Shown here in pieces: positions 340 to 62,811 of a stretch of 64,000 bases of DNA. The notes under the pieces are model-generated. The model saw only the letters and a program-made list of their open reading frames with translations, was not told the origin of the DNA and made no database searches. Source of the DNA: Trichoplax adhaerens. Its lineage: Eukaryota > Animalia > Placozoa. The stretch is taken from positions 390,952 through 454,951 of the forward strand of contig NW_002060973.1 of the NCBI RefSeq assembly GCF_000150275.1, written 5' to 3'. Position numbers and translations under genes: made by a program. How positions within the stretch are numbered: the stretch's first letter is position 1; every line of letters begins with the position of its first letter.

Positions 340-3300
340 AAATTGTAATGGAAATCAAATCACTTCTATAGCTGGAGCACCGTTTTCTAATTTGAAAAAG
401 CTTGACAAATTGTATGCTTAGTAATTATAGATTCTCTATCCTATCCTAGATACTTAGTATAATTGGATCCATAAGATTACTAAAATTAAAAAAATTTAAT
501 TATTATTCTCCAATTAAAAATTATTTATATTTAGATATTTAAATCAAAATCAGTTAACAGAAGTGGCTCCTGATAGTTTTAATAATTTGATTCATTTGCA
601 TATCCTGAAGTATGTAATCTAGAAGAAACTTTTAACTGGCCTTAAAGGGCACAAAATTGATTAATTTATTGTAAAATGATAAGTTGTGATATATAGCGAT
701 CACAAAATTCCAAATTTTAGAAAAATAAGGGCTTTATTGAATCTTATACAAAGATTAACTACACACAGCTCTACTCTAGCCGAGTACTACTACTAAAGAC
801 TTCTAGAACGAACTAACAGAATAATCTAAAGTTGCATGCTTCTATGCTTTTCGTAGCATTCGCAGCTACAATCCGCATGGCAACCTTTTACCTTATTTTA
901 CACTTAGTAAAATTATTCTTAGTAACACTATTCTACTGCAGACCATCATTAATCCGATATGGATACGACTACAGTATTTACGTAGACGTTATTCACACCA
1001 GCAATAGTATAATGAATTAACCATATCCTAATATATGATTTGCAGTTCTATTTTTACCTGTAACCTTATTAGTAACTCAACACCTTACTGTATATAGTCA
1101 TCTATACTTTAGCATAGAGTCTATACCACTATAGTCTATAGTTATGGCTACCAAATATCTCTTAGGATAAATATCTACCGCACATTATACTAAACATGGC
1201 TAACAGTCTACAATTACAATACTAAGTTACATTACACAAGTACTTAATGGTAACTGCAATCATTTTGTGTATATCTCTCTTTGAAACAGCTCAATAGATC
1301 ATAATAAACTTACCCGTTTATCCTGTCTATCAATCTCCGAAAATATCCATGATTTGTAAGTAATACGATTACAACTTGTTCTTATTTATACCATTCAACT
1401 AAATCAATTAAATTTTTATATTATTTTAAATCAATGCATAATAATTATGGCATTATGACAGAGTTGGTAGTAAAATTAAATCCGGCATTATTTCCAATTT
1501 TTCGATTTCGATTGTAATTGTATTGGCGAAATACTGCTCGCATTTGCGTATATTCCTGTAATCATCCTTTTAAAATGGCTAAAGAATAGCCTTTCTCAAT
1601 ACGATTAGTTAAGCCATTCTACAGAACAAATTTAATTATTGCTACTGTCTTGATAAATTTAACATTTTAATCTATCAGTACAATACTTAGAGTAAAATTC
1701 CAGTCTAGAAGTTCACATGCGTTGTTTCACTAATTAAAATTTGCAAAGACAATTGTGCAATAATTAAATGAAATTAGTTTTAAGACGGGCTATGGAAGAC
1801 TGATTACGAATATTTATACTAACTTTTATGATGCAATTGATTTAAGCATATTCTAACTATATTTATATTACTGGATGTATAATTTAGGAGTTTAAGTCAT
1901 AACAATATATCCTATATCTCACCAAGTTGCAATAAAACATTTGGCAGTTTACTGAAGAGATTGTAAGTCACAATTCATTTATTATCTCTTTTAAATCTAA
2001 AATAGAACTAAGACATATCAAAAACGACTATCTGTTATAGAGGACATATATAAATATGTAATGATCTCAGCTAATTGCAGTAATACGGTATGTGACTGAT
2101 AGAATATGGACTTGCACTGCTTCTACTATGAGACTGTAATAGCACACGTCTATGTACNNNNNNNNNNNNNNNNNNNNNNNNNNNNNNNNNNNNNNNNNNN
2201 NNNNNNNCGAGTAATGAGCAAGTTTTATTTAAGCTATCAAGATTACCTCCAGCGATGTAAGCAATGAAAAAAAATTAAATGATGATCTAATTTTCTCAGC
2301 CTAGTCTAGAACTCTGTCGTATTATTATAATAAAGTATAATCAGAAATTATTTAAAAACTTATTCTTGTTTTCGTACTTGAAAAATAGACTATTGGCAGG
2401 GAATAACATAAGCGCTATTCCGATATCGTTTTTAAAATGGAATATTTATCTTAGAACATTGTAAGTGAATCTTTTGTTAATCGATCTAATAATGACCACT
2501 TAGTATTTAAAAGAGAATTTAAGTATGGCGTAGAATAAATAAGAATTAGTCTTACATTATCCTACCGGAACCGTATCTAAATTTATGAAAAAGTATGATA
2601 AACCATATGAGAGTACTTTATATTAAATGATGCTGTCCATTATAAACTTAACTAGTATAAGTAGAGCACAGCTAGGATATTGCGATTATTATAATAGCAG
2701 ATAAATTTTATTTAACACGAATGTTTAAAATTAGTTAAGAATTCTGTGAAAGTTATTTATTGCAATTAAGCTATACTTGAAGCCTAGTCTTACGACTTTT
2801 CATTGTTTAGGTCCATTAGCAGCAACAAAATGTCACTATCTGCCATTAAACAAACCATGCGTGGCCTTTATATTGACGATGGCTGCATACCGCCATTAGT
2901 CTATAACTACGGAGAATATTACAGATGCCATCATTATTCGCTGTAAGTAAACAATATGTCCGTAATTTTTATAATACAAATAACTTACATATAATTGCGC
3001 AAATCTTCTCGATAGGACTTGACTTCTTTTCAGTATCTAGAATATTCTTACCTCGAATGACTAATCTCATCATTTATTTTTATGCAAAACTGACTTGATC
3101 AGAGACTTGAGCGACTGTGGACTGAATAAAATTCCTTTGGATATTTTTATCCATCTTCATGGCTTTTTAAAAGTCTTGTAAGTCAATTTAAGTGGCAACA
3201 ATTATCATATATAGTTTCTTTAACCTAAAACGTTGAAAGAATCTACGAATAGGACTATAGGTATTTCATTTTTTTATCTGATTTCTTAATTAGCTTCCAT

Positions 3301-6300
3301 TATATCAAATTTAATTTTGATGTATTGATAGTAATATTTCTATTTTCTATTTCATCGTATTACATTTTAATACTTTAATACATTTATAACAAACAAAGCC
3401 TATTAACCATTGAACAGTAAAATTTCTTACAATTAATTCAATTTTGAATACACGAGCTTATAAAAGTAAAAATTTCATATTATCATCCACAGTTAATTTT
3501 AAGACTAATGAGAAATATACGAATGTTTTCATTTACAACTTATGTTCATAGCCTGCTAGTAACTCACAAATTCAATGAGTACTATAATTTTGAAGGATAT
3601 CAACGTTTTGATTTTCTTCAATAATATCCTAAAAATTGTTACGGAAGTTTATTGGCATCGTTTCTTTACTGGATAATTCAATGTGAGATTATCAACTGAA
3701 TCAGTTGAAATACCATTAAACATCCAAAATAGGAATAAGTGTCATTTATCTTCTGCCATGAAATCTGTAACAGGTTGAAGATACCTAAAATGCTAATTTC
3801 CGCCGAAATTAGAGCATCAATTACAGCGCACCCTTATGCTAGTACCTGATATTTCAATAATTATACAGCACTATAATGCTAATGATAGTCTATATTTCAA
3901 ATTTTATTTTAATCTTCCATATTAAAATATTTTCCTTTCCACCTTATTGAGCAACAGAACACTCAATAATAACAACATCGAAAATATGGATGCGTCAGCC
4001 ATATTTCGAGATAGTGATCACAATTTACGAGAACTGTAAGTTCATTTATAAGCTATTCTTTCACTTAGGTATCGTTGACAGGAATGCAACCTTTGCTGAA
4101 GTTAAATTTCTTTTGATGCAGAACATCATTTAAATAAAATATATATTATCATTATTTTATCTATTGCTTCCTAGATAACATCGTAATGACATGCAATAAA
4201 TGCTAAGTATTGACTGAATAGCTATTAAATTCCAATGTAGGCATTTGGCCAATAACAAAATATTGAACTTCACGAATTCTAATAATATACAATTTAATGC
4301 ATTAAAGATACTGTAAGTAGCAAAAGTTTGCTCTATATAAACTTTTAGACTGTGAAAATGAAATAATGATAGTCTGTATTTTTTCGAATTTCGTCAATTA
4401 TTCAGAGACGTCGCTAAAAACCGGCTAACTGATATTTGCGGAAGATCAGATTTATTAGGAATCGCACCCTATGTATTCGATATGTAAGTATTCGTTTCTT
4501 AATGATTTTTAACCAAGTAGCTATAAATATGTTAATTATCTGTGGTTTATACGTAACTACAGATATTTAGATTTCAATCAAATCCGAGTTTTAAAACCAA
4601 GATGTTTTGGAACCCTATTCAAGCTACAGAAACTGTAAGTACTATTATCGCTAAAATTTATGGAGCGAGATAACTACTCACAATTACAGTAGTTTAATAG
4701 CCTCACTGCTACTACGATATAGCTCTTGGCATAAGAGATAATGCCGTACCTCACCATTTCATCATCAGCTACGGCCCATTTGGATACTTTATTTTATGCG
4801 AACCATTACAAATAGATAACTGTTTAAGTGATGCACTGTGTATGAAATAAACTTTGTCGTAATTTAAATTATTCAGTTTACTTAGATTAAATATTGTACT
4901 ATTTCTAATCTCATTCTCTCTAAGATCAATTAAATCGAATCCATTAGTGGCTTTAAAGGAAGTTTCATTTTATGGCTCAGCTACCTTAGGCGCGGTGTAA
5001 GTTAGATGACCATAAACATCTGATTTTGTAGATTTAATCGAAATTTTATTATTGTTAGTTACCGGTACTGATCTAGAAGTACTCGCCAAATTTGTTACCG
5101 AAATCAGTAATATCTCAAAAAATTATCAGTTAAAGCTTCTATATAATAAGTTAAAATTGAAATATTGAAAGAGTTGCATTAATAGTTTGAATAAAATCGT
5201 ACTTCGGTGGATTAACACGAATTAAACGTCGCTTCTGCGGCGATGCATGAAAAGATCTCAAATTGAGTAAACTTTACCCTTTCATATAACTATCCTAAAG
5301 CTAATTTCTTACAGATATGATTGTTACAATTAAATATTATAGTACTTCAAGAACATTTGTAATCAATGTTAATATTAACTATTCATTTTGTAATTTCTTA
5401 TTTCATTTGGACGATTAAATATCGGCATGTTAGAGATTCTACTCGCGCATATTTATGCTGCATTGTTCCTGCAAAGATTACTACCTGCTCGCCATCTCCT
5501 GATTTAGATTCTGCTTCAAGTTGTGAAAATATTCTTGCTCATACGACTTTACAATTAGCTGTTTGGATTATGGCTATCGCTGCGTTCATTGGAAATATAA
5601 TGGTCATCGCCAATAATCGTTCTGATAAAACTCGCAAAACGAGCAAAGCTACTGAATTAGTCTTCACGAATTTAGCATTGTCTGATTTCTTAATGTCAAT
5701 ATATCTAATTATCATTGGAATCGGCGATTTCGTATATCGTGATCGTTATGCTCACAATACTGAAGAATGGCTTAGAAGTCCTACTTGCGTCATAGCATCA
5801 TTTTTAATATGTACATCAAGTTTAATGTCAGTTCTTATGATGTTGTTTATAGGCATCGATCGTTACACAATTACTTCAGATCCCTTTGCATCATCGGATA
5901 CAAGATATAAAAGGACTAAAATATTACTCGTATTAGGATGGCTACTAGTAGGAGTTTTCGTAGGCATACCAGTTTTTATGAGTATTAACCAACCCGGCGA
6001 CAGGCGTCTATATCAGTTAAGTTCAATTTGCTCTCCAAGTAATTTAAGCGATCGATTCTATGCTAGTTGGACAATTTCATTTGTAGTAATTCAACTTTTA
6101 TGCTGGATTTTAACTTTAGCACTTTATTTAAAATTAGTAACTATAGTAAGTAAAACGCAGCGTTCTGTTCGAAGTAGTGCTCAATCACGCAGTTTTGCCG
6201 TTGCTATTCGGATATCACTGATCATAATAACAGATTTATTGGCTTGGCTACCAGTTTATATTATTTCCGTTATGTCCATCGCACAAGGCACCCTAAATAT

Positions 6301-7135
6301 ATTCATTCTACAATTTGCTGTCATCTTAGCTATTCCACTGAATTCGGCTATTAATCCATATATTTATACGGCTACTGGAACGGCTTGTTTTTATCGCTTA
6401 ACAACAACTAAGAGCAAAAGAAATTCAATGTACTATTCAGCAACACGAAATACTTCTATGAATCAGTTTACAACTAATATCAATAAATCGAAGTTTACTA
6501 GTACTAATCGGCTTTCTAAATATGAGACTGTGATTAACGATATTGATGATCGTATTCCTGAAAAACTAGACGACAGCAATCAAGACCTTAATGAAGTTAC
6601 TAACAATCAAACTGTTCAAGTAGTCAATAAGAAAGAACATAGTTCTCATTCTACACAGCCCATCGTCACTGTAATATATTATGCTCATAATGTAGGCTTC
6701 TTATTAAGTATCCGGCGAAGTAAAAACTGTAGCACAGTTTCGTGCTTAGCTGCTAATGTATTAGCTATCAACGGCGATCTGGACTCTTCTCGTGATACAA
6801 ATTTAAAAAATTGCATCATGATTGATGTTAGTAACTTCTTGCAGATTTATAAACTGGAAAAAATAACTTGGAAAAGTGAAGAAACCGATGCAGCCGTAAT
6901 TAATACCGGTATTATAAATCCTGCATTTGATGGGAATGATGATTGGAATACTAAGTTTGCTAAAAATAGAAAAGATATTTTAGCAATAAGGACTGATATA
7001 AATCATCAAGCATGTGATCGCATTGACGGAGAAGAAGACAGTGTGCAACATAATCAACTAAGTAATGTTCAGTATAGGAACGCAGGAGTACAAGGTAGGT
7101 ATTATCCTCCTTTATTTCTTACTAGAACAAAATAA
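340..7135 (+). CDS. LRR-containing rhodopsin-class GPCR (LGR type C-like 7TM), paralog 1; 5'-truncated by window start, multi-exon
   Basis: Phase 2-2 AG/GT-bounded LRR exons at 340-411, 535-609, 1290-1355, 1888-1962, (gap)2208-2256, 2389-2460, 2811-2942, 3103-3177, 3958-4035, 4241-4312, 4406-4483, 4563-4634, 4925-4996. These match exons 49-61 of gene 2 one-to-one. Terminal exon starts at 5434 (ttag|a gat tct act cgc gca tat tta tgc tgc). Possible extra terminal exon 7176-7228. Confidence 0.9.
685..1236 (+). mobile_element. Solo-LTR-like element, family A, copy 1
   Basis: TGTGAT...ATTACA termini and TSD taagt/caagt. Similar to 10099-10663 along its whole length. Confidence 0.75.
2158..2207. 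other. Assembly gap (50 N), truncates an LRR exon of gene 1
   Basis: Run of 50 n. The following bases encode the 3' half of the exon homologous to 40885-40971. Confidence 0.98.
5434..7135 (+). CDS. Hinge + 7TM + cytoplasmic tail exon of LRR-GPCR paralog 1
   Basis: ORF 5366-7135 (true exon starts at the acceptor at 5434). Shows hinge YLCC..CSPSPDLDSASSCENIL, TM2 NLALSDFLMSIYL, DRY, ECL2 SSICSP, TM6 TDLLAWLP and TM7 NSAINPYIY (NPxxY), all LGR-family 7TM hallmarks. Confidence 0.93.
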
Positions 7136-7656
7136 ATCATTGTTGTAATGGAAGTTATTTTTCATTTATTACCAGATGAACAAGATAGAAGAAGTAAAAA
7201 TTCCATTGTAAGAAGCAATTCTTGGTAGTTCCTAAACAAAAATGATACTACTACTATCAATGGTTGACGTATAATACTTAGGAAAAGTTTTCATTTATTT
7301 AATTATGATATTTACTATTATTCTGCACTCAATATGACTGTAACTCGTACATACTTAGTAATAATATTAGGTTGCCTTTAATGTAATCATATTCTCTTTT
7401 TCATATCATGTTGGGTATTCTTTTCGATTAATTAGATTAATGTTCAATGCAAATTCCCCAAATTTCTTGCCGATAGCATTATCATCAACACTGTTTCCTT
7501 CGGTACCGATGATATTTACTATTCTATAACCTTTCTAATACTATTTCATAATAATAAATATTCATATTTAGCTCTTAATCATTGTAGTGATGCACCTCAT
7601 ATTTGATTTCACCGATAGCTATGTTTAAAGTAGCTTAGAAGAAGGTTGATTATTAA

Positions 7657-8110
7657 TGTAGTGTATTTAGAATATACTGTAACTATATTCTACTCTTAAA
7701 TATAGACATGTTGTATTGCTCTTATATTTAGACATATCTGCAGTCCGCTTACTTCACATTCATATATAGGCTACTGTATTTAGTTATTACAGTACTCGCT
7801 GTTTGCTACAATCATCAAATATGTTGTAACCTGTTATGGTATATGTTGTATCTAAATCTACAATCCTATTCTTTGCATGCGTTCTATCTTTAAGCTATAA
7901 ACGTCGCCCTTTTCCACCTCAGAAATCGTTAGTTTCCTGGTTAGTCTTCGCAGGTTACTCACGACAGCTTGCACGCTGGTCTACCGTAACTACCTCACTG
8001 TACTTACTTAACTACTTAAAATAAAGTATAAGTTTTATACAACTTTTGGTGTACTAAATGTAAATGGCAACTAAATCTCAATCCTCTGAGATATCGAACC
8101 CTACATCACA
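7657..8110 (+). mobile_element. Solo-LTR-like element, family C, copy 1
   Basis: TGTAGT...ATCACA termini and TSD attaa/agtaa. Inverted copy at 26466-26951. Absent from the homologous spacer near 48600. Confidence 0.78.
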
Positions 8111-10098
8111 AGTAATATTATTCATTACAGACTATTGGTAGTATACTCCTATCAAAATACAAGGCCAAGTCTGGGTGAATAGCTATAGAATAATTGTGAA
8201 GATGCTTGACCCTTTACATTCTAGGACATTAATAAATAAGTAAATACATCTTAAGTAAACAGATTCAAACAATGGCAACATTGATTGCTCACATGAAGAT
8301 AAGTGTTGCATTCGTTTATTTTATTCTAATTGTTAGCCATTTTTTTTGTGGTAAATTGATTGATTTTAAACTATATGGGAGATACAAATAAGAGGCTCGT
8401 AATTGGTTCGAGTTCATTGTTAATAATTCAATATTACTTGACTGTTCTATAACCCTGCAGTAATTGTTTTTATATTCTGTCTTAACTTTGACAATTATTT
8501 TGTGATAATTAGGGTTTTAGATAGATCAAGGAGTTGGATATTTTCATTTCAGTAACAGGTTAAGTTCCTTATTATGACCTGCTATTGTTTTGTAATTTTT
8601 ATATGGTAGAATTTTTTTTTTTATTCGATATTTATGGAGCAGTTTAAATTTTTATAGTGTTTTGCATTTTGAATGTAGTTGTGTAAAAATAAGTGTTACA
8701 ATTGCGTTAAAGTTTTAGCGAGCAATATTGAGTACCGTTACACAAATACGAATTTAATTGCCGATATACTTATGAACCATTTACTTTTAGTCACTATATT
8801 TGATAACATTGACCTATAAGTTTGCATAGGTTCCTTTTTACTTTTTTGCTGCGAAATAATATTCGTAGATAAATACTTATCATATTTCGATAGAGATCGT
8901 AAATTGGGTGGGTAATAGTTGATAATAACATTTTTTTGATACTTACATTCTGGTATAGCCAACTGCTTAGGCCTATAATGTTCATTTACCGACACCTAGT
9001 AATTAATACGTATGCAAATTTAACACTAAATGGTATATTTTCAAAGAAAGTTTCAGATCAATTTCGCCTAAGGAGACGAATAGTTTATTGACATCCCACA
9101 ACGAAAGAGGAGATCTTCGGCATTTACTGCTGTATTGCAAGACAGATGTTGGAAGGACTCGCCTGTCAGCAGGCTTGTAATGAGTAATTCCTATTCTGGA
9201 ATTTTAAGGTCCAGCTTATAAATTTAACAGAAACAGATTCTGTTTGTTAATTTTTTGTAATTAATTAATTAATTATCAATTTTTATTTATTTAATTTCCA
9301 ATTGCTTCATAAGAAATCAGCTAGAACTTGGATAAACCAATAGCAAGTGATAATAGTAGGCATTTAAAATTGATTATATATAAACAATCACAAAATATTC
9401 GATAAAAGGATCATTTAAGCAACGAAAATTTGTTTCAGGACTGTTAAGGCCAGGGATAATCAATGTTCTGTAGTGTAATACACTTACATGCCAAGTTCGT
9501 AAATATATTTTGAAAAATATGCTTAGCATTTGTGATACGATATTAAAGTCAAATATGCTTGAAATTTTATTAAATTCAGGGATCACATTTTCTATCAACG
9601 ATATATACTGAGTAATAATGAATAGCTATTTATTATTAAGGTTTGCAATCCATAAAAAGGAATCTGAATTACTAGAATAAAACATTCTCTACTACGGAAT
9701 AAATGCGCGAGCACCGCTTTTAACCTTAAAAATATTATTTACCATGACTCCGTCTGTGGGAGAAGAAGCTACTTTTAGTCTTCTAAGAAGAACTATAGAA
9801 AAATAGCAAAAACAGCCCAGATAATCAAGTTATTCAAATCTCCATCAACAATTCCGTAAAATGTAAACAAAAGACAATCAAATACTCCTTTAAAATATTC
9901 TACGCTGAAACTAAGATTCGTATTAGCATATGAAGAAACAGAACTATGCATGACTGTCATTTACCGCTTTTTATGTGCACAGTGCGATAAACATATGTAC
10001 AATATTTCATTATACCAGCCATCATTGTAATTCCTTTTTTGAGGACGGCGACTATTCTACGTCACATGGCGCTTTAACTCATATTAACTTTGTACTTT

Positions 10099-10663
10099 TG
10101 TGATAAAATCTGATCACGAAAATTCCAAAGTTGTAGAAAATTAGAAGAACTTTATTAGATCTAATACAAAGACTAACCACACACAAATCTACTCTAGCCA
10201 AATATAACTACTGAAAGAATTTTAGAAAGAATAATCAGATAATCAAATGTCTCCTGTTTTTATACTCCCAGTAGCCTGCGCAGCTAGAATCATCATAACA
10301 GCATTCTACCATATTTTACACATATGTAGCTTATTATTAGTCACAATATTTTACAGCGAACCATCAGTAATCCAATATGGAAATGATTGCAGTATTTTCG
10401 TAGATATTATTCCTACCAGTCAAAGTAAAATGAACTAAGCATATCCTGATACATGATTTACAATTCTATTTCTACCTCTAACGTTATTAGTGGCTCAACA
10501 TCTTACTGTATATAAACATCTGTGCTCTAGCATAGAGTTTATCCTTACAGTCTATAATTATGGGCTACTAAATATATCATAAGACAAATATAGAAACCAC
10601 ACTACCGTACTTCAACCTAAACATGGCTAATGGCCTACAATCACAATACTAAGTTACTTTACA
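10099..10663 (+). mobile_element. Solo-LTR-like element, family A, copy 2
   Basis: TGTGAT...TTTACA termini with perfect 5-bp TSD ACTTT. Confidence 0.82.
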
Positions 10664-11429
10664 ACTTTACATAAAATTTATGATAACATGCACATTTTTT
10701 CTATGCTATGAAATTTATTGCATTAAGAGTCACCATTATCTTCAGAAATGAATAATTTCAAGTGTAAAACGTCATAAAAACATATGTTGCCTTATAAATA
10801 TTTATATAGTTTATGAAATTATTACGTACCTGGCTGCGATTCTATAAACCTTGTGGAGTATTTGCAATACGTGGCAGTAAATCAATTATCTTTTGTCAAA
10901 TTATTCTGATAGTAAAGTACAGTATTTTGTTTGAAATTGTTATTTCAATCTGTTATAATAATTATTAATTAGGAATAATATCTATTTTGCGATATCGATA
11001 ACAATTAATTCGAAAGCTGTGCACGTATTGTGTTGACTTAATTTTATTTTTCTGGATCATTAACATCGATTATAAGAACGAGCTATTGTATAGCGTTCTA
11101 TTAGTTTTTCACTACAGCGCCTCTTTGTTTCTCATTTGATTCTTTAATTAGGATTTGAGGTCAAAAATGATACTATAATGATTGAAGTATATCCGCTAGA
11201 TTAAAATTAATTTAATTATGAATAACATTATTATTATCTAGAAATTTCGCAAGATCATGCAAATTCTTTGGCTGATAAATTTCTGCATAATTTATCCTTA
11301 CAAATTTTACAAGTTCTTTCTTATGATAAACTATTGCCTTTTCTTTAATATCCACTTCGCGTTAAAGCAGTTAGTAAACGAACCTGCAATAGATAGCTTT
11401 ACGAACTTATCACGAATAGCTGGTCAATT

Positions 11430-49900: not shown

Positions 49901-51830
49901 ATCATTGTTTAAGACATTCTCAGAACATTCGGAACAGCATCTTCCAAGCAATGAAAATTTGTCTTGAGACTAGGAAAGCCATGGGGTAAACGGTGTTTTT
50001 ATGTAATAAGGATGTACGAATAGGCCAAGATTTTAATCGCAGTCTCAAAAATATCCTTACGCGACACGATAATATACCAAATGTCGATTGCGTATAAAAT
50101 TTTTATTGAATTTATAATTTTACTTCCTTTAGATAACGCAAGCCAAGTTGCTATGAATAGGTTTTTATTGAGGGTCACAACCTATAAACTCGAAAATTTA
50201 GTTATTAAAATAGAAGATTCTCTAATGTGATACAAATAGATGAGCTCTGCTTCTAACTTTAAAAATATCAATTATTGCAACTCTGTCAGAAAAGAACCAA
50301 TTTTATTATTCTCAAATTAACTGTTCAATGGCTAAAGCAAACAGAGTAATCGACTTATTAAACTCTAGAACAACAATTCCTTACGATTTAAGCACAGTCA
50401 AATACTCCTTTACAATGTTTTACTCAGAAATTAAAGATCACGGTAGTATACAAAAAACACAAATTTACATGGCTTTCAGGTAAAGCTTTTAATGTGCTTG
50501 GAGTAATAAATCTAAGTACACTTTTTCACCAAATCAGTCATCATTACAGTTACTTCGTTAAGCACAACGACTATTCTACGCTACTTAGTGCTTTACTTCT
50601 GTTACAAATCAAATACGTAACGAGAAAATTTAAAATATTACAGCAACTATAGCGCTACGAGTATACTATGAGATTTTTCCTCCCGATATCTACCTCCATT
50701 ATAGTACGACTTTAAATACTAATGATCACCTATCACCAGGAGGAATAATGCCACAAGTCTGTCGTAGGCAAAAATCAACCCAAACTGTATTGAAAATTCA
50801 GTCAATTTCTAGTGTAGTCACAAGATTCTACTTTAGTTGCTACTACTTAAATAGTATTTTCAGACTACCTACTTATCGACTAAAAATACGTAAATTATCA
50901 TAGATAATCTAATATCAATACATTTCTAGATAAGCAATCTTATAAAAACTATGCTACCACTACTACGCCAAAGTTACTCCTTGAACACCTCATATTACTC
51001 TTGCACTTTCAATAAAACTAATTTCTCCAGCGATAAGATGAATCACTGCAAAAATTTAATTACATTTCAAATCAAAGCTACAGATCCAACGACAGAAATT
51101 TATTATAAAAAACGTATGTTTTCTCTTCTAAAAAATTTATCGCAAGAAGTTGCTTTACCATTATCTTCAATAATTAACAATATTGAGTTTGAAAAGCCAT
51201 TAAAACATATGGTGCCTCCTATATATAATTTATAAAATTACAAAATTCCCGGCTACGTTACGATAAACCTTGTAGAATACTTGTACTACGTGGTATTAAA
51301 TCAATATATTATCTTCGGCAAGTTATTCCCATAGAAAAGTATTTGCGAAGAATTGCTATTTCATTCTATTATAGATGACCAATGATATGCACTATACCGA
51401 ATACATAACACTCACTTAAAAGCTGTGCTTGTATTGTGTAGATATAATTTTATTTTCTCAGATCATTAAAATCAATTATTAAAATGAGCCGTTATACAGC
51501 GCTCTATTCGCTTTCACGACAACGCTATTCATTTTCATTCAATTGCTTAATTGCATTACGAGATCAAAAATAACATCGCTGTAATTGAATTATATCGGGT
51601 AGATTAAAATTAACTTTGTTATAAATATTAATATTGTTATATAAAATATTTACAAAATATAAAACCTTCGGTTGATCAATTTCTGTATAAGCTCTCGATA
51701 TAAATTTGATAAATTCTTTCAAACGACAATTTAATGGCTATTTCTTCAATATCCGCATCACGTCAAAACAGTTAGTAATTGCATCCGTAATAAATACCAT
51801 TACTAAATCATCAGCAATAGCTGGGTAATT

Positions 51831-54800
51831 ATGAAACTCTTTATCGTCTTATTTTGGTCAAACATATTCTTTGACTTCCTACTACTGGCATCAGGTAGGG
51901 ATATTTTTCATTGGAATCGTGTCTAATTTTAACTGCTAAAAATTTAACTGTAAAATACCTTCCGTAATTTTGTTCAACGGGTGATATTACGAAAAAGCTT
52001 AACAGCATTGTTAATCGATTTTAAAACCATACGGCAATCATTTATTAATTTAACGAGCAAAATTTCTTGCTCTGTTAAAAGTTGATAATGTTCTAAATTA
52101 GGGAGATTTTTCTTAATTTTTAGTATTGAATCACGAAAATGTAATAGGTTATTAGTGCAAACAGCCTTTCAAGAGGATAACATATTGTGCGATCTGTAAA
52201 TCGTGTTCTTGAATTATGTATCAGTTCCTAATAACTGTGCTATCTTGAATAACTTTCCTCTGCTGGTGGATAACAGAAAAGATTTAGATGCCTCGTATTT
52301 ATGTTAAACGCTAATTTAAGAACTCTCCTTATTACACGCTATACCTAATTTTAATATACTTTTGCAACACTTATTGCTCGTGTGTTATAATTAGTATCTG
52401 GAGCTTTCTAAACAAATCAGATAGAGCATTTACGTGTAAAGACCTAACTACAGACAGCAACATCTACGAATACAGATATGCAATGATTAATATAAAATGA
52501 TTATTTTCGTAATATTTCCCAACAATCTAACGTAAAATGGATGCAATCACAACAGTTTGAATTGTAAACGACTAATTTTTATTGCTGTCCCTAAGTCTCT
52601 CTTGCTCAAATACCCTAGACTTTTATACCTTCAACGACGGATTGTACCGTAAAGTGTCTATAGAATCTAAATACACCTTCCTAATATGACAAAATCTTAA
52701 CTAGAGAGTCTGCAGAGTCTACTTTAAGCCTTTTCAATACTTTAAAGTCCTTGATCATAGGGATTCTTAACTACACTCCTAACACAGTCGTTATTGCAGT
52801 ACTGATGCAATCATGCTTTTGCTCTATTTTGTATCACAGATGTTGTACTTATCGTAGCACTTTTAAAGTGTCAGTGCAAGCAGTAACTGGGGTGCCTGTG
52901 AAATCTACGTTATTTCTTCCTTATGCTTGAAAGTCATAATTACAGAGATTCTAGCTTACACTGTCATGATTTTACTGTATCGCAAGTCTTAGCACTTTCG
53001 AAATATCAGGGCAAGCTCAGGTATACAGTACTAAGTCTGTTGATGCAGACTGGATGTACTAGTATATAATTCATTTCAACTTCATTTGAACTGTTTAATA
53101 ATTTATGTACTAAATCAAGGTTATTTTGATGACCATTATATCTAAATTAGAAGTTGTCTAAACGAGGTTAAGCTCTAAAAGTTATCTTAACGAGTCCTCA
53201 CTAATCTAAATTCTACAATGATCTATCACTGTAACACTTATTAAGCGTACAGTAAATTCTCCTTTATATCAAATCTTTGCTATCGCCATTTATAACTAAT
53301 TCTTGCGAGGCCAACGTCAATCTTTAATGGTGTATACGTATACGCGTACGTATAAAATACCACGTCACCTTATCCGTCTTATGATACTACAATTAAGAAG
53401 TATTAGCCATAAATATGGCGGATCAAATATTATTATGGTGGTTGATTCAATTTCCTTGATACCGTAAAACTTCCTAATATTCGTATAATCAACGCTGCAT
53501 GTAATCTGATGCTCTGCCATGTTTCATAAATCTGGCTATTAGCACTTGCTCGTAAAGAAAAGAATTCTCCTTAAGCAACAAAAATTTTCAAATAGGTCTA
53601 GATTTTCGACCAACGCAACTTGCGGTATCGTAGAGCTAGTCATCAGAGAAGATGTAATACTAGCTCACTACTTGATCGATGCGCAAAATATGCAGTAACT
53701 CCAGTTAGAGATTAGACCTTGTTGGAAACTTAACTGGAACAGAACGAAAACTTTATTTCACAACTAAAGCCTCAGTTTCTAGATGTTATTACGTATGATC
53801 AGGTCATGTAATAGAATAAATTTTAAAGATTTTACGGTAATAGGTTTCATATGCTAAACAGTAGACATTACTGTTTTAGACAAACGTAAACTTCTGCACT
53901 AAATCCGTAGGCTAAGTTATGCTTTTTGCCGAAGTCAATAAGAACAAATATTTGATATCGATATGGACATATCACATTAAATGCATGTAGCTTAGCTGGA
54001 TGGTTGTATTAAATTGAGAACCAAGCAAACAAAATCAATGTTACATTGGTATTTCTTTATTTGTTTATAGTAAATTTTCAACCTATTAATGAAAAACTTG
54101 TTAGGTAACTTGACATAATACAATAATATTGTTATGGCATTGTCACTGTAAAGGAATTAGCGAGGTTTAGCGATACAGCCTTATTTAGGTTAGGAAATAG
54201 TTCATGATTTAGACCATTTATTTCTTGATATAGTAACTCGGTAACTGGGCATACTACAGCATTAGTGTCATGGTGTAGCCTCGCCCTAAAGAATTTAGTG
54301 ACGAAGCATTATTTAGCTTAGGTGATGGTTCATAATTTAGATGATTTTTTCTTAAAATATTACATTATGGCTTCCTCCGGTGCAGCAAATTGATATATAG
54401 TTATGACTAATTCACATCAGATTGTACTTTGGTTTACTATGATATAGATGATTCCGTGAATGAGCATTTTGTAATCTAATTGACTAGTGTAATTTAATTT
54501 ATACTTAGTCTTCAGAAATCAATCCCCAGATATTGACTTATCAATTAAGCATTTATGTACGAATCCTCTAGATGGTTTATAGCGCTATTAGTACTAATTA
54601 TAACTTTAAACTATAGTTGAAATATATAATCTTGACATCGTGTAATAAAACTAGTAATTAGGTTCAATAATGAATACGAAAGTGGAAGGTATATCAACCA
54701 CTATGAATCGTTAAAATTACGTATAACTGCTCCAAGAGTTTCTTATAAAGGTTGATTACCTGACGTATACTGTAGTTCTAGGGTAAGATTTGTAGATTAG

Positions 54801-57800
54801 GCCTTCTTGTTATCTAGTTACATAGCTTGTCTCTGACTGATATACTAGAAGATGCAACTTTAAATTGATTGCTGCATTAAATATGGCTAAATCATTTTAG
54901 AAATATTTACTTTTCTTACTGCATAATAATAGCTTTACAATGTCCTCAAAGTTGCCAATGCACCAATGGTTCCACAATGAAATGTCAAAACCCCCTAATG
55001 AGTACTTTTCCAGCTTTAATGGCAGATATGGTCAATATAACATACTTGTACGTATATTACCTAGCGCTCTTCTGTATAAAGTTCCAAATCTGTATAGATC
55101 TTAACTTTGGTCGAAATTTTTTGTGTTTACACATACGGCGCTTTATGCAAAATCCTACCGTTTGAACAAATACAGCATTTTTTAAGAATTATAATTTAAT
55201 TTCATTATTATTCCAAAATATGGCCATCCACTTCTTGAAATAGACAAATTTCTGGCACAAGCATCCGACATATATATAAAAATAATTTGTCTCATTATTC
55301 AAAGCTGACGTCACTGTAAGTTAAGAAATGTTATATTATCTACTGTGAAAATCGAAATGCCACATAAAAATAAAAAAATGTAGATTTATAGTTTATGATA
55401 ATATTTTGTTTCAATTCCTAAAAATATGAAGCACTACCTTAGGAATTGTTCTTGCTATTAATAAAGTAAATCCTTATCATATTATGATGAAATAGTAAAT
55501 ATTCCAAGTAGGCATATGAAATATAGAAACTTGATAGAGCTCGTGATCGAGATAAACTTTTGGAAGAAATTATTTGTTCCCTCGAATATCCGTATATGAT
55601 AACTTAATCGTAATAATATATCACTGTCACTTAAAATATATTGATAGCGCAGTCAATATGCTTACTACGACAGATAGAGTATATGGGTGAAATAGCAATC
55701 AATAAGAAGAGAAGAGAATTCTGTTTTATTTTGTTTTGTGTGTTAGAACGCGCTCTTTGCAAAGATTACAGTTACTATACCATAGACTAGCGAAATAGTC
55801 ATACGAATTAATGTAAATTTAACATAAGTGCAGTCTTGTTTCTGGTATTGCAAGGGTAGTTGTAACACATTTGTAACGTACCCTTAATTAATAAGCCGTG
55901 GATCGTAAATGGAGGTTATGCGATATCATATCTTTAAAAGTGAAATATATTGCTTGAATCAGATATTTATATAATAACAAGCTAGCGAGTGTTGATGACG
56001 GAGCATTTTCAAATTTGAATAAATTAAAAACCCTGTAAGTAAATTTTTAAGTAAGCCGCATATCGATAATAATTTAAAGTATATGTTAATACAAAAAATA
56101 AATCACTTTTTGCTATTGTAATGAGTGCTTGGAATTCGTTATTATCTTAAATTTACGAGTTATATATTTCGATAAGTATTTTTTAATGATTTGAAATCGA
56201 TTATCGCTTCAGATCCTTGAAAGAAAATCGATTGACGGTCTTAAATTCTTCTCAAATATTTGTCGGTTTGATAAGTTTGAATTACTTGTAAGTTAGATAA
56301 AATTGAAGTTCTACAAGAAATTAATTCGTTTTTCCATTTATGGACAGTAGCTAAGCAAAATAGATAGCACTAACTTACTTTTTCTTTACCAATTTTAATT
56401 CTAATTAAGGGTTCCTTTAGTGCTTTTGCTTAAAATACTTACGGGCATTATTATATTTAATAGTTGGAGAGCAAACTAAAAGATTGCTACTATTATATTA
56501 CATCTTCTAATGAGGAGAGTTTTTAACAAAAGCTCTATATTTATGGATAATATCACTTTACAAAAATTACTGTGAAATTTAAAATTGGTTCTTTGGGTAC
56601 GACTCATAAATGTTATAAAACTAAGATGGTTAATTTTATTTCCATAGATATTTGCAAGATAATAAAATAAAAGCCATCGAAGAAGGCATATTTGCAAGCC
56701 TGAATAATTTACAAAAATTGTAAATTTTGGTAGTATGAAATAATGATATTGTGAGAATAAATAGTTGTTTAAAGTAATATAGCGAATTCAATTACCCTTA
56801 TACATAAAATAGATATGTAAGAGAAGGCAATACGGTACTTATATCAACTGACGGGATGATACACTAACGTAAAATGTAACTTGTAAGAAGTTTATTCAGT
56901 CAGTTTTAGAATTTAGTCTGTATCTATTTAATAAATTATAACTCGACTAATTTGTAAAAAGTCTACTTTCTCTGCTGCATAATTACTGCAATAATAGTTT
57001 GAATTATTATTCATAATTGATACAGGTATTTAAATGAAAATTTATTGAAGTCATTAAGTTCTTCCAGAATCTTTTATGGGCTAAACAAATTGAAGGAATT
57101 GTAAGTAAGATAGCTGTCAATAAATAAACAAGATCATGAAGATTCAGTGTATTTCATTTAAATCAGTTAAGCTACTACATCACTATAACTGAATGACTAT
57201 TATTATAAATATTCGCTAAATGTTTCATATGCATACGCATATATTTTATTTATGAGATATAATATCGAAAAGGATTACTCTATAGTTAATGATCAATGGG
57301 ATCAAAATTGGGCGATTGAAAGTCGATAATTTTAATAGCACGGCAAATACTAGTAAATTTATAATCTATAATCTTTAAAAGAGTTAAGATCGAATGGAGT
57401 GAAGGTAATATCTTCATTTAATTAGATACTTGAATAAAAATTATATCGAGCAAATTGAAGATGAAACATTTACAAGTTTGAAAACCTTAAGAGTGCTGTA
57501 AGTCTTGTAAAAGAGTAAAATGATCCCCGATGTCTTATTGGTTTAATTTAAAGATAATACATCAGATATGTTTGAAAATTTAGCGATTATTTATTGTGGC
57601 GACTATTTATTCATTAATCACATTTTTGATGTGATATTGACCGTTGAAAGAAATAATTAACTTATTGCGTTCTTTCCAAAATGATGCAGTGATTTGCGAG
57701 ACAATTCCTTGAGCGAATTAAACTCTCCAAAGCTATTCAATGGAGTAAAATACTTAAAATATTTGTAAGTCACTATTATGTATTCGGTATATGCATTTAA

Positions 57801-60800
57801 AGTACAGTTTTCATATCCAAAAAAGTAAATTTAAATATAATACCTTCAAGTTTGAGCTCTATTGTAATCTTCTAATGGTATCATGTTACCTGACCTATTT
57901 CGTAGAGACTAGCAACATTTGTTGGGACAGTAATTTCGATACTTTCTTCATCACTACCAACTAATTGAGATTAGTATTTACTATAATGTCACTAGGCGAT
58001 CAGCTGTAGAGAATATCTGTTCTGTAGTCGATTAGTCTAGGCAATGAGTTAAGCCTTCAACTTAGAACAAAATCACAAATCCAATTTATTAACCAAATTG
58101 GCTAACGTTTAAATAGCTATTTTAATGGTGTATGACCGCTTGAACTATATCAATGCCTCTAAGGACTACAATATGATTATTCTAGGAGATATTTCACATA
58201 AAATCTTTCATTCAAGACTTCTGTATACTCTATTCTAGTCCTATTAAATATAGAATTAATATTGGAAATATTTATGATTGTCGTCATTTCTTATCGAACA
58301 CATTTAGTATACGATTTTAAACTAGAATATTCAAATTTTACAAATCAAGTTTATAATATATCGGCATTTAAGGATAGTGTCGGCTAAACTTGTTCCCAAC
58401 ATCTATATCTGGGAATCTACTGCTAAATCTAAGCATTACTATCTAAACCGAATAACATCAATCCAGTTGAGGTTACATCTTTATTAAGAAAACATAAATA
58501 TGATCGATCTTGGTCCTACTGCTAGTATTCACACTATATTTAGTAATAAAATAGCCTAAGAACCTGAATGGCAGTTTTCATGCCCTAATATTATTCAAAT
58601 CTACATACATATGCTATACATATAAGAGCTTGTTACGTTAATTTTGTGTCCTGATATAATAAAATATAGTTGCTATATAAAAGCAGTGAAATTGAAAATT
58701 AAATTATAACTTCTTCTACAACTTGTCGCTTCGCTTCATTGAGCAGCATGTGCGGTAAAGGGGACTCTTAGTCATCGAATAAATTGAAATAAAATAATTC
58801 TCAATCCTACCTTACGTAGAAAATGCTATTACACAAATACTACTAATGGTTTTTCTTTACTTATTTAGATACTTAAGCAACAATAAAATAGGAAAAATTG
58901 CAGAAGGAACTTTTGCGCAATTACCTTTTTTGAACCTAATGTAAATATGAAAGTATTAAATCGTAGAACTTAATTAAGGCCGAATGGCTGAATTTCATCA
59001 TCTAAATTTTGGTACTACTATTGATTTTTGAAATTATTTTGCATTAATAACTAATATAGAACTTTACAAAAAAATTCATTGACCTCTTTAAGTTCCGGAA
59101 TGTTTCTAGGGTTGCGAAATTTATATTACTTGTAAGTTATCATATATAAGTATTAATTCGTTTAAATATGTATAAAAGCTTTCAGAAAGACGTTAAATAA
59201 GTTATCTAGTAATGAATTATTATTCTTGAAGTTATGACTAATAGAAATATTAGGCTTATTGATATCATAACGTGGCAATAATGCAATAATTAGCGAATTC
59301 GCCTAAGAGAAAGGTGTTCTTATTTTTAGTAATCAGTAACTTAAGAACTATATTGCAACATCTAACCTACTTACTACAATAAAGCTAAGGGTTTAAATTA
59401 TCCATTAATTATCAATGTACAGGCCTTTTCATAAGAACGCGGGCATTGTTTTAATTTTTAGTGATTTTTCGAATAAATGCGGGATAAATCGCCGTAACTT
59501 AGTTGAAATAGATTAATATTAGCAACAAAAGGAAGCTAAACTGAAAGAGTAATCAGGAATGCGGAGATTACTATAGGTATAAATTAAAAATAACTATCAA
59601 CAATTCGTGCAAATATTCTCTGCTCTATGAGCTCAAGATGACTTCACACCAGAAAAAGAGAAAATTTAGTACAAGTAATGCAAGATGCTCGAAATAAATC
59701 GTACCACATTATAACCAGTCAATATTAAAGAGATATTGCTAAAGCTGGTTGTTCTTGCACTTAATAACTTGAACGATATATCTTATTCTACTATACTATC
59801 ATACCTCACAATAAAGTCTAGCCAAGCCAAATTAAGATAAAAATCATGTTATTACTATTTATAGAAAGATAGTTCACGTATGCTGTTTATAATAGAAAAA
59901 AAATATTTCATTAAAAGAATCTAATTCTATTGCTCGAAAAGACTTTAAATCCACTTATTCCAATAACATATACACCATGTTCACTTTTGGTCAAGTGATT
60001 TTTTTCTAGGTTTTCAAAGTCTTTTCTTTAATAAATTATTTATCTAAATACTTAACAGATCTACTGCTTCACTAAGACATTATATCTATAATCTAATTTG
60101 TAGTTTATGGAATAGTTAATTTATTGGTTGTTATCACTAGTATCAATCATGGCTCTAGTATACTTAATTAAATAGATTAATATGAGAGTTCACAAAAATT
60201 CGAAATAAAATAAAGATTACGGCTAATGTCTATAATTGGCCATTATAAATTCTATTATTACAGTATTTATCTCACAATCTATTTTACTTAGTACGTTTAA
60301 GTAAATAGTAATCTAGATATAATGCTAGAGCTAAATGAAATATAGCAGTAAGAATTATCAAGAAATGATGATTTATTGAATTAGAAGTTAAATGTTAGGT
60401 TTATAATATAGGATATAGCTGATCTGTTACATCTGCATATACGTAAATGTCCATATTTTATGCAATTAAGTTCTTACAAGACTTCAATAGATTCTCTTTA
60501 TTGTAACTTTAGGTACTTAAACGATAATAAAATTGCTACCATCGAAAATGGAACTTTTGCGTCTTTGCAATATTTGTATTTGCTGTAAGTTACTTTGTAA
60601 TTGTCACGAAAGCAATCGTCGTGACGTTTACTTTATTTTTATGTTACGTTCTGTATATGTTTATATCTCAAAAACGTTTTACGGTTTCCCTAATTGTAAT
60701 TTTAGTCGTTAAGAGGTGGTATCCTTAATTTAGGATAAGATAAACTAAAATAGTAATTGCCATCCAGCTAAACTGGATTGTATCTTTCGACTCCAAAGTT

Positions 60801-62545
60801 GTTAAGGTTCAAAGTACAATTCCTAAGTTTAGAGGAAATGTCTTAGTAGGATAGGTTTATATGTATCCGTTAAACTATTAGTAAGCAATGATTATCTTAA
60901 TACTGCTACAATAAATTTAATAGGATTAGACTGTATCTAATCTGTACAGATAGAATCTCTTAAAGGTATCAATTTGGTCAATTTCTAATAGACGAGGCGA
61001 CTTGTGTAGTTAAACCGGCTTTAGGTACTGAAATCTATGTAAACAGCGAGTTCGCCGACAATAAATTAGATTGAGATTTTCTAGTAAGTTTTGAAGGTCT
61101 GGCTGTGTTAAATTTTATCTGCCTTAGAATACCAATTGTCTGGTATTCCGAATAACAGTAGTATAGGAAAGAAATTACTCTTTCAATCCTTGTTGCTAGT
61201 TAGGGTTATTCCTAGCTTGTAACCGTGTCACAACCAGCTTCGTGACAAGGATAACGTAAAATAAATCTCTAAATCTCTAAAAATCTGCGGATTCAGTATC
61301 CCTACTCACAAGAATTTAGACGCCTTTGATTCTACGTTAAACTCAACTAGACAATTGAGAACTGCTTTATTCAACTATCTGACGGGCTTATATACCCTTC
61401 TACAGCAGCTAACATTCATGAGTCATCCTATAAAAATAGTTAGGTGAGAACATCTACTAACTAATTTTTCACAGTCGGACTACAACATGTTCATTCACAG
61501 AATCATTTCAGTGCACATTACAGCACAGCATTAAATTTACAGTAACGCATTTATAATTAGAGTAATTCCTATTGTAAATAACTAGTTGTAATATATTATC
61601 ACTATATTGTATTAACCAAATTTAGGTAGCTATTTCTTCACGGTAGTTCGTACCGTGACTGACCGTAATTATTTCTTTATCTTCTATACGGAACAAATAT
61701 AATGGTACAAAAAATCGTGTTTGTTTCATGGGCTTGCAGCAAATACAATACCTACGCTAGTCTATTTGGTCATCATAAATAAGTTATTGCAATATTATTT
61801 GAAGCTTTTCGATTAATGACAAATATAGGAGCTTGGAAAGAAATCTGATACGTGCTTTGGATTCTTCTAGGATGTTCGAGAAATTAACAAGATTGCAATA
61901 CTTGTGAGCAAAAAATAAAAGTGAATTTAGATAAGAAATCATCTACAATTCATTAATTACTGATACCGAAAATAGAAAAATTAGAAAAGATTCATCCGTA
62001 ATTGCTACCATCTACAATATTTATATGGTCTCTTAAGAATTGCCAAATTAGTTAATAAGCCTAAGCTGACTATTTTTAATTTATAAACTTTGAAATATGA
62101 AAAATTCGATGCATATGTATCTCATTTTATAGATACATATAAAGTGTTTTAACGAATTGAATTAGTACATAATTATCTTTGAATGTCTATGGAATTGTTA
62201 TTATTATTTCAGATATCTAGGCGAAAATAAGATAGAAAAAATTGCAGACGGAACTTTTGGAAGCCTATACTACTTATACGAGCTGTAAGTTATCAGATCA
62301 TTTGATATATACTCTTAGTTATCAATTTGATGACTTTAAAGCATAATTTACGTCTTAATATGCAGTATGTGTCTACAGACATCAGGTATAAATTTCAGGT
62401 TAAAAATTGATTTTCTTCTTTGATTTACGTTACCTAAGTGACAAAAAAATAATTTTCATACATAATACAGAAATCTACAAAAAAATTTGTTGAAAGATTT
62501 AAATTCTCCGAAAATCTTCGAAGGACTATGGTATTTACAGAATCT
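51831..62545 (+). CDS. LRR-GPCR paralog 3, 5' part (signal peptide, LRRNT, 13 LRR exons); continues into the gap and beyond the window
   Basis: Exons 51831-51894 (MKLFIVLFWSNIFFDFLLLAS), 54933-55047 (LRRNT CPQSCQC), 55244-55315, 55963-56034, 56213-56287, 56648-56719, 57026-57100, 57426-57497, 57690-57764, 58869-58940, 59060-59131, 60513-60584, 61829-61903, 62213-62284, 62471-62545. Collinear with gene 2 exons 1-14. The 7TM is not in the window, so GPCR identity is inferred from paralogy. Confidence 0.87.
60602..61664 (+). mobile_element. Two adjacent or nested solo-LTR-like elements; inner family D copy at 61226-61660
   Basis: Inner copy is similar to 17783-18351 (TSD aaccg/gaccg). Outer element begins TGTCACG at 60602, with gtaat on both flanks. 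Confidence 0.62.
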
Positions 62546-62761: not shown

Positions 62762-62811
62762 NNNNNNNNNNNNNNNNNNNNNNNNNNNNNNNNNNNNNNN
62801 NNNNNNNNNNN
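62762..62811. other. Assembly gap (50 N) in gene 3
   Basis: Run of 50 n where the counterparts of gene 2 exons 15-16 are expected. Confidence 0.98.

Follow-up and report, generated by a model that had tools for sequence, protein, structure and literature searches.

The 64,000-nucleotide stretch of Trichoplax adhaerens DNA analysed in this study (scaffold C1384:390952-454951, hereafter the window) carries part of a head-to-tail array of giant genes for LGRs, G protein-coupled receptors (GPCRs) with an ectodomain of leucine-rich repeats (LRRs). It contains the 3' end of one gene (gene A), the whole of a second (gene B, 11430-46985) and the 5' part of a third (gene C), each about 30-36 kb long and spaced 39.8-40.4 kb apart. 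The LRR-GPCR array is a correct observation, far beyond chance. As the genes duplicated in tandem, purifying selection acted about equally strongly on the LRR solenoid and the seven-transmembrane domain (7TM); repeats are gained or lost only in an N-terminal module, where units of one or two exons are duplicated or deleted. In the explanation that we consider probable as a whole, the array is made up of the placozoan-specific LGR genes A, B and C and at least one more, gene D, past a scaffold gap, and these genes look like conserved, subfunctionalised ligand receptors.

Self-BLAST of the window gave colinear matches at offsets of 39.8-40.7 kb, including the pairs 5430-6390 and 45226-46186, 10674-12106 and 51096-52500, and 15655-16638 and 55945-56932; this bears out the three head-to-tail paralogs about 40.4 kb apart proposed in a preliminary description of this DNA. 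In gene A the 7TM exon begins at 5434 and in gene B at 45230; start codons lie at 11430 (gene B) and 51831 (gene C). Two long open reading frames (ORFs), 5366-7135 and 45366-46985, each gave a full-length Pfam 7tm_1 match. For the LRR exons, all open segments bounded by AG...GT in phase 2-2 were scored with a profile made from the window's own repeats. At a threshold of at least 9 bits, 58 exons were found on the plus strand of the window and none on the minus strand (best minus-strand score 7.3 bits), where the LRR-exon signal is absent from the profile scan; extended to 184 kb of the scaffold, the scan found 126 and 0. Searched singly, the LRR exons match Pfam LRR_8 at E values of 0.0015-0.026, and the homologs in Trichoplax sp. 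H2 match LRR_8 at 8e-31. GC content is 27-33% across the whole window.

The predicted model of gene B comprises 62 exons and about 2,092 codons, encoding a signal peptide, an LRRNT cap, 59 LRRs with one exon each, and a single last exon for hinge, 7TM and tail. The coding sequence of 6,279 nt (2,092 codons before the stop) was obtained by arithmetic on the exon coordinates, the exons having been searched individually and not as a joined protein. Its parts are as follows.

11430-11493, plus strand: exon 1, which carries the start codon and the signal peptide (MKLFVILFWSNVFFDSILLVSG) and closes in phase 1; 73% identical to gene C (51831-51896).
15127-15241, plus strand: exon 2, the LRRNT cysteine cap (CPQTCQC...C), phase 1 to 2; Pfam LRRNT, E=1e-3.
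15440-22482, plus strand: N-terminal module, the first LRR and 13 exons of alternating type.
19901-21114, plus strand: a pair of exons recently duplicated in tandem, 20056-20127 and 20243-20314 recurring as 20762-20833 and 20949-21020.
24159-39807, plus strand: 32 central LRR exons, mostly of 72 nt, one-to-one colinear with genes A and D.
40034-44732, plus strand: 13 irregular membrane-proximal LRR exons of 66-123 nt, spliced in series and confirmed by transcript.
42287-42409, plus strand: the 123-nt exon among these, a single LRR with a Cys-bounded loop, backed by transcript joints and a protein match from Trichoplax sp. H2.
45230-46985, plus strand: last exon, with hinge, 7TM, a 240-aa tail and the stop codon; identified by ORF, Pfam and transcript.

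The 59 LRR exons follow one another from 15440 to 44732, are all open, and carry one repeat each between AG...GT borders in phase 2-2, as the preliminary description had stated for the LRR exons in general. All their lengths are multiples of three: 72 nt (43 exons), 75 nt (seven), 78 nt (three), 66 nt (three), and 81, 87 and 123 nt (a single exon each). The codons split at the 59 exon junctions encode L (47), I (9), M (2) and V (1), corresponding to the hydrophobic L4 of LxxLxLxxN, which provides a strong internal check on the model; the codon split at the LRRNT border (exon end 15241), read by hand rather than computed, should be TTA (Leu). Within the N-terminal module, repeats of the type YLxxNKIxxIxDGxF (72 nt) alternate with repeats of the type xLxxNxLxxLxSxxxFxGL (72-75 nt). 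The LRRNT cap exon is kept in gene C (about 54933) and in gene A (window coordinate -17674).

These genes are transcribed, and are spliced as predicted over at least the 3' approximately 26 exons. An RNA-derived contig of 4,481 nt from run X5, aligned to 40000-45999, has 13 GT..AG joints that run from 40034 through 44732 to 45230. It links exons 40034-40105, 40230-40301, 40398-40463, 40624-40698, 40885-40971, 41105-41176, 42287-42409, 42561-42635, 43786-43863, 44055-44126, 44222-44299, 44407-44478 and 44661-44732 to the last exon, from 45230 onward. The LRR exons and the 7TM exon therefore belong to one transcription unit, at least in the 3' part. A further 916 nt of the contig lies upstream of 40034, its loose end matching exon 39736-39807, indicating that about 12-13 more LRR exons are carried; at the other end, the contig extends about 0.8 kb beyond the stop codon. 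Five of the 13 joints are backed by run X7, from a second study. Run X1 gave even depth over the introns and none of the joints, and thus behaves as DNA. The transcript exposed two gene B exons (87 and 123 nt) that the LRR profile had missed; no exon skipping was seen in the transcript contigs, a form of assembly that drops rare isoforms. Among 40 strain variants listed for X1, 12 are exonic (8 synonymous and 4 non-synonymous), too few for a test, and some may be paralog cross-mapping.

Paralogs were compared through genes A, B, part of C and part of D, the last of which lies in the downstream flank (LRR exons 104035-129871 and last-exon codons from 131038, in window coordinates). Genes A and B have 42 exon pairs in strictly colinear order, of which 40 agree in length, odd lengths included; three more pairs were added later. 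Each B exon from 21533 on has a colinear partner in D: 47 partners are of equal length, one differs (72 versus 69 nt) and one falls in a 50-N gap. Odd lengths of 66, 75, 78, 81, 87 and 123 nt are kept between paralogs. Mean amino-acid identity for A-B is 52% in the LRR exons, 69% in the hinge and 7TM and 31% in the tail, and B-D identity is 76% in the LRRs and 83.5% in the 7TM. Exon number varies only in the alternating N-terminal module, which has 10 exons in A, 13 in B and at least 12 in C; exon 57690-57764 of gene C, for example, has no counterpart in B. The whole-exon gains and losses noted in the preliminary description are thus real, but they are limited to this module, the other 42-48 exons being one-to-one colinear. 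The common exon phase keeps such changes in frame. In the two-exon duplication of gene B, a 511-nt alignment is 94% identical and all 26 mismatches and 4 gaps are intronic; the duplicated exons show no difference over 144 nt, against about 7% in the introns, indicating selection, or exon-limited conversion, on both copies.

Selection was measured as the ratio of non-synonymous to synonymous divergence (dN/dS, omega) by the Nei-Gojobori method, the values being pairwise averages across two or three paralog pairs. The B-D pair was used since its dS is unsaturated (0.4-0.56); A-B dS is saturated (1.3 to 3 or more), leaving only relative dN usable, and B-D and B-C were used in its place. For B-D, omega is 0.24 over 1,111 codons of the LRR exons (dN 0.135, dS 0.56) and 0.21 over 345 codons of the hinge and 7TM (dN 0.081, dS 0.40), and the B-C value for the N-terminal module is 0.28. 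In the 33 regular 72-nt exons, the B-D omega is 0.08 at structural positions, 0.20 at the variable (x) positions of the concave face and 0.36 at convex and other x positions; A-B identity gives the same ranking (0.75, 0.43 and 0.40). An excess of non-synonymous change on concave-face residues was accordingly not found in the B-D pairwise comparison. Constraint is stronger on the concave face than on the convex one, the reverse of the pattern in variable lymphocyte receptors (VLRs) and plant R genes. These values, together with the colinearity of the repeats, do not support the rapidly remodelled, diversifying repertoire of the preliminary description. Purifying selection with a fixed repeat number, which it had held to speak against its own proposal, was largely found, except that copy number varies in the N-terminal module.

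The last exon identifies the genes as LGRs. In gene A it reads as follows.

5434-7135, plus strand: gene A last exon, with Cys-rich hinge (YLCC, CSPSPD, SSCE), 7TM with DRY and NPYIY, long C-terminal tail and stop; identified by Pfam and a mapped acceptor.

The full-length 7tm_1 profile is matched at E=7e-23 (A) and 9e-26 (B). The hinge motif YLCC...CSP(S/T)PD...SSCE lies within the first 35 residues of both last exons, where the alignment to RXFP1 begins, and DRY, NPYIY (NPxxY) and the Asp of transmembrane helix 2 (TM2) are intact. A rhodopsin-type 7TM, an LRR domain of 59 exons with an LRRNT cap, 13 LRR exons spliced to the 7TM and a Cys-rich hinge are the features of an LGR, and the gene B model with its 7TM and LRR matches confirms that the tandem family consists of giant, exon-modular LGR-type genes. 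The closest solved relative of the 7TM is RXFP1 (E=5e-31), followed by FSHR/LHR/TSHR (1e-24 to 1e-22) and LGR4 (1e-13). The signal-peptide exon leads directly to the LRRNT exon without the LDLa module of type C LGRs, and no 6-Cys pattern or DxSDE was found in any plus-strand frame of the upstream or intron-1 DNA of genes B and C. The ranking of RXFP1 as best match comes from a PDB search rather than a tree with bilaterian LGRs, and the published classification places 41 Trichoplax LGRs outside types A-C (PMC9545775). The last exon also varies in length among paralogs, encoding 584 aa in gene B, 566 aa in gene A and 530 aa in gene D. Hardly any constraint is seen on the cytoplasmic tails (46270-46985 and 6470-7135; about 220-240 aa), with a B-D omega of 0.84 over 176 codons (dN 0.48, dS 0.57) at 39% identity, and 31% identity for A-B.

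A search of the genome (105.6 Mb in 1,414 contigs) with the 7TM revealed about 50 near-full-length LGR-type exons in several arrays, bearing out a tandem family; further arrays have a spacing of 24-40 kb, as in the C1380 array (34-39 kb). Eight exons are close (67-100% identity), on scaffolds C1384, C1413 and C1410, and form a clade with 100/100 support in which A pairs with a C1413 gene at 40 kb and B with D. Four further close paralogs sit on C1413 (at 5.5 kb, 40 kb and 9.61 Mb) and C1410 (at 4.82-4.85 Mb). Two family members have a TGA inside the 7TM match (C1413:9612294-9613277, L006, and C1380:10204-11253) and are possible pseudogenes. The last exon of gene B is 100% identical to the NCBI entry TRIADDRAFT_33357, partial [Trichoplax adhaerens], a model of 337 aa that covers only part of that exon and includes the 7TM alone. 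Public proteins of the subfamily are fragments of 337, 370, 599, 791 and 894 aa, the last being the longest found, as expected from the earlier suggestion that automated models fragment these genes; the H2 homologs carry the automated names GRL101-like and relaxin receptor 2. An unrestricted search of 1.8 billion cluster representatives gave no match of at least 50% identity longer than 510 aa, and placozoan relatives at about 45% identity reached 1,270 aa. A literature search by TRIADDRAFT gene identifiers gave no match, and one on intron phases in LGR genes yielded no usable paper.

A re-annotation of T. adhaerens in 2022 listed 46 LGRs, namely 2 of type A, 3 of type C and 41 placozoan-specific ones with their own hinge and unusually many LRRs, 34 in the example Tadh-LGR-15; analyses of exon structure, tandem arrays and selection are absent from that paper (PMC9545775). 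The array genes belong to the same species, have many LRRs, no LDLa and their own hinge, and cluster with Trichoplax LGRs. They are almost certainly among or next to the 41, although no particular Tadh-LGR number was matched. The architecture had been thought possibly undescribed. The full 59-repeat model is new, but the oversized placozoan LGR family is already published (PMC9545775), and the array genes are new and so far the largest members of it. This study adds a complete gene model and a selection profile, and it shows that exons turn over only within the N-terminal module.

The array genes share with the placozoan-specific LGRs (Tadh-LGR6-46, PMC9545775) the species, the many LRRs, an own Cys-rich hinge, a rhodopsin-type 7TM and a lineage expansion; they differ in repeat number, with 59 LRRs in gene B and about 56 in gene A against 34 in the published example. 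RXFP1/2 and GRL101 (type C) are similar in the 7TM (E=5e-31 to RXFP1) and in the short C-x-P-x-P-D...SSCE hinge before TM1, whereas the array genes lack LDLa and have 56-59 LRRs rather than the roughly 10 of RXFP. Glycoprotein-hormone receptors and LGR4-6 (types A and B) have the same order of LRRNT, LRRs, hinge and 7TM, with the 7TM in a single last exon, but they are low-copy receptors with 9-18 LRRs, other hinge types and a more distant 7TM (1e-24 and 1e-13). The mammalian LHR, FSHR and TSHR genes likewise devote a small exon to each LRR and keep the intron phase constant, a shared trait of the family. Introns interrupt TM2 and TM5 in some RXFP/LGR3-type genes (PMC11863921), but a single exon encodes the whole 7TM of the array genes. 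Lamprey VLRs, plant LRR receptor-like kinases and proteins (LRR-RLK/RLPs) and the expanded Toll-like receptors (TLRs) of invertebrates resemble the array in their large LRR ectodomains, tandem clusters and changes of repeat number; however, they have a hypervariable concave face, often with omega above 1, whereas here the concave face is constrained, the repeat order is fixed and signalling is of the GPCR type.

If the genes are conserved ligand receptors, the conserved concave face of the very long LRR solenoid would be the binding site for a specific extracellular ligand, and signalling would proceed via the hinge and 7TM to G proteins or arrestins. The ligand would most likely be a conserved protein, endogenous or environmental, and the paralogs may have been subfunctionalised rather than drawn into an arms race. 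Several observations weigh against this. The LRR exons change faster than the 7TM in amino acids, as the identities above show for both A-B and B-D. Pairwise omega averages over sites and time; episodic selection is possible at a few positions, such as the exon with the Cys-bounded loop or repeat position x3, which is only 10-48% identical. Transcript evidence reaches only the 3' part of gene B, and the 5' two thirds are predicted, on the strength of the exon prediction and paralog conservation. Placozoans are without true TLRs, which leaves room for an immune role (PMC6321704). Such a role, or a chemosensory one, was the suggestion of the preliminary description. In this reading the LGRs would be pattern receptors of a variable repertoire, possibly replacing TLRs, with LRR surfaces that diversify by positive selection and exon shuffling. 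The size of the family with its several arrays, the gain and loss of N-terminal exons including the recent two-exon duplication, a Cys-bounded loop that varies in length and sequence among paralogs, and LRRs less conserved than the 7TM would all agree with it; lectin-ectodomain GPCRs have moreover been proposed as placozoan pattern receptors, in a paper that does not discuss LGRs (PMC6321704). We nevertheless regard it as unlikely, since it is not supported by the omega, colinearity and concave-versus-convex tests: the 1,111 LRR codons are under purifying selection, more strongly on the concave than on the convex face, 42-48 repeats are strictly colinear with their idiosyncratic lengths kept, the duplicated exons are identical though their introns have diverged by 7%, and the transcript contigs show no exon skipping. 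It is decidedly improbable, too, that these LGRs of about 2,100 aa and 56-59 repeats serve to recognise microbes or environmental cues by way of their LRRs and signal through G proteins or arrestins; in that case the N-terminal module, and possibly skipping of phase-2/2 exons, could tune specificity, and selection at a few sites, for instance in the Cys-bounded loop, could be masked by the averaged purifying selection.

The ectodomain of about 1,450 residues (59 repeats) goes far beyond the need of known LGR ligands, and constraint is uniform along the whole solenoid with no short binding patch. These properties would suit receptors for adhesion or tissue organisation, in which the solenoid makes cell-cell or cell-matrix contact and the 7TM is a signalling anchor and not a hormone sensor. 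The 7TM, however, retains its G-protein-coupling motifs and the hinge resembles that of ligand-activated LGRs, and we consider an adhesive role very unlikely. That the array is an artefact, be it LRR exon-like debris, pseudogenes or an assembly duplication, is largely refuted and has a negligible probability. Gaps do cut gene A (2158-2207) and gene C (62762-62811, and N from 64001), a 1.19-kb island after the second gap is 99% identical to a gene B intron, and a TGA occurs within the 7TM of a family member. Against this stand the spliced transcripts, the 59 open exons of gene B, the intact long last exons of both A and B, an omega well below 1, and an identity between paralogs of only 52-83%, too low for assembly duplicates.

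Gene A starts about 17.7 kb upstream of the window and has about 56 LRRs. Its exons in the window, apart from the last, were recognised by profile matches, by colinear pairing with gene B, and by the H2 protein P0003 aligned exon by exon.

340-4996, plus strand: the last 14 LRR-type exons of gene A.
340-411, 535-609, 1290-1355, 1888-1962, a gap-cut exon ending at 2255, 2389-2460 and 2811-2942, plus strand: exons of gene A.
3103-3177, 3958-4035, 4241-4312, 4406-4483, 4563-4634 and 4925-4996, plus strand: exons of gene A, continued.
2158-2207 (gap) and 2208-2255 (surviving 3' 48 nt), plus strand: the gap-cut exon, homolog of the 87-nt exon 40885-40971 of gene B.

The gene B exon 40885-40971 sits between the homologs of gene A exons 1888-1962 and 2389-2460, and a tblastn search with its peptide gave a match at 2216-2251 (EQVLFKLSRLPP), with a GTAAGC donor at 2256; 2208-2255 agrees with the last 12-15 residues of this exon, as encoded in both gene B and gene D. 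To the left of the gap lies intron, with stops in all frames, so that the acceptor and about 39 nt (about 13 codons) of the gene A exon are unread and frame continuity is uncheckable there; the nominal 50 N agree with gene B geometry within about 20 nt. Exon 2811-2942 (132 nt) is the homolog of 42287-42409 in gene B, with a Cys-bounded loop that differs in length and sequence.

Gene C and a further element of gene B are represented by the following features.

51831-62545, plus strand: 5' part of gene C, with signal-peptide exon 51831-51894, LRRNT at about 54933-55047 and first LRR 55244-55315.
55963 to 62545, plus strand: at least 12 further LRR exons of gene C, the remainder lying beyond assembly gaps.
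18453-18497, plus strand: putative decayed LRR exon remnant with an in-frame stop in gene B, from a weak tblastn match of gene C exon 61829-61903 (ALDYEKLFEK*SQLE).

The remnant sits within a 2.2-kb intron of gene B and is a probable decayed LRR exon. About 750 bp 5' of the start codons of B and C are kept at 69%, together with exon 1 (10674-12106 and 51096-52500), and this stretch is a candidate shared promoter region of the array. Downstream of the window, 39,004 N fill 64001-103004 (C1384:454952-493955), and another 12,052 N begin about 38 kb upstream of it. The genome search gave no 7TM match within 64001-103004, and the 7TM exons of B and D are 85.8 kb apart, which suggests that the remainder of gene C and the start of gene D are inside this N run. 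The second 50-N gap, 62762-62811, is followed by an island of 1,189 bp that is 99% identical to gene B intron 22555-23744; in the intron DNA nearby, B and C share only about 72% identity, and the first 810 nt or so of the island were found nowhere else in the genome. The island (62812-64000) probably stems from an allele of gene B and was scaffolded into gene C by mistake, or else it marks a conversion event of very recent date. LGR introns also contain a young interspersed repeat, about 0.4-0.6 kb long (23365-23991, 31559-32185, 35617-36237 on the minus strand, and 63622-63995), with 686 first-look candidates in the genome and 38 scored copies that are 92-94% identical. A second repeat family of about 550 bp, with copies 70-81% identical, sits in introns and intergenic DNA of the array (684-1236, 10098-10663, and, on the minus strand, 13846-14394 and 27305-27865).

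In sum, these genes have about 59 repeats, where the Trichoplax example in the literature has 34 and bilaterian LGRs have 9-18, and they illustrate how large a gene built from one repeat per exon in a single phase can become without losing its frame or escaping selection. Public models of 337-894 aa mean that GPCR and LRR censuses, single-cell tables and deorphanisation screens relying on them miss most of each protein. Considering that the array is unlike an arms-race repertoire, experiments on these receptors would be directed toward conserved ligands.

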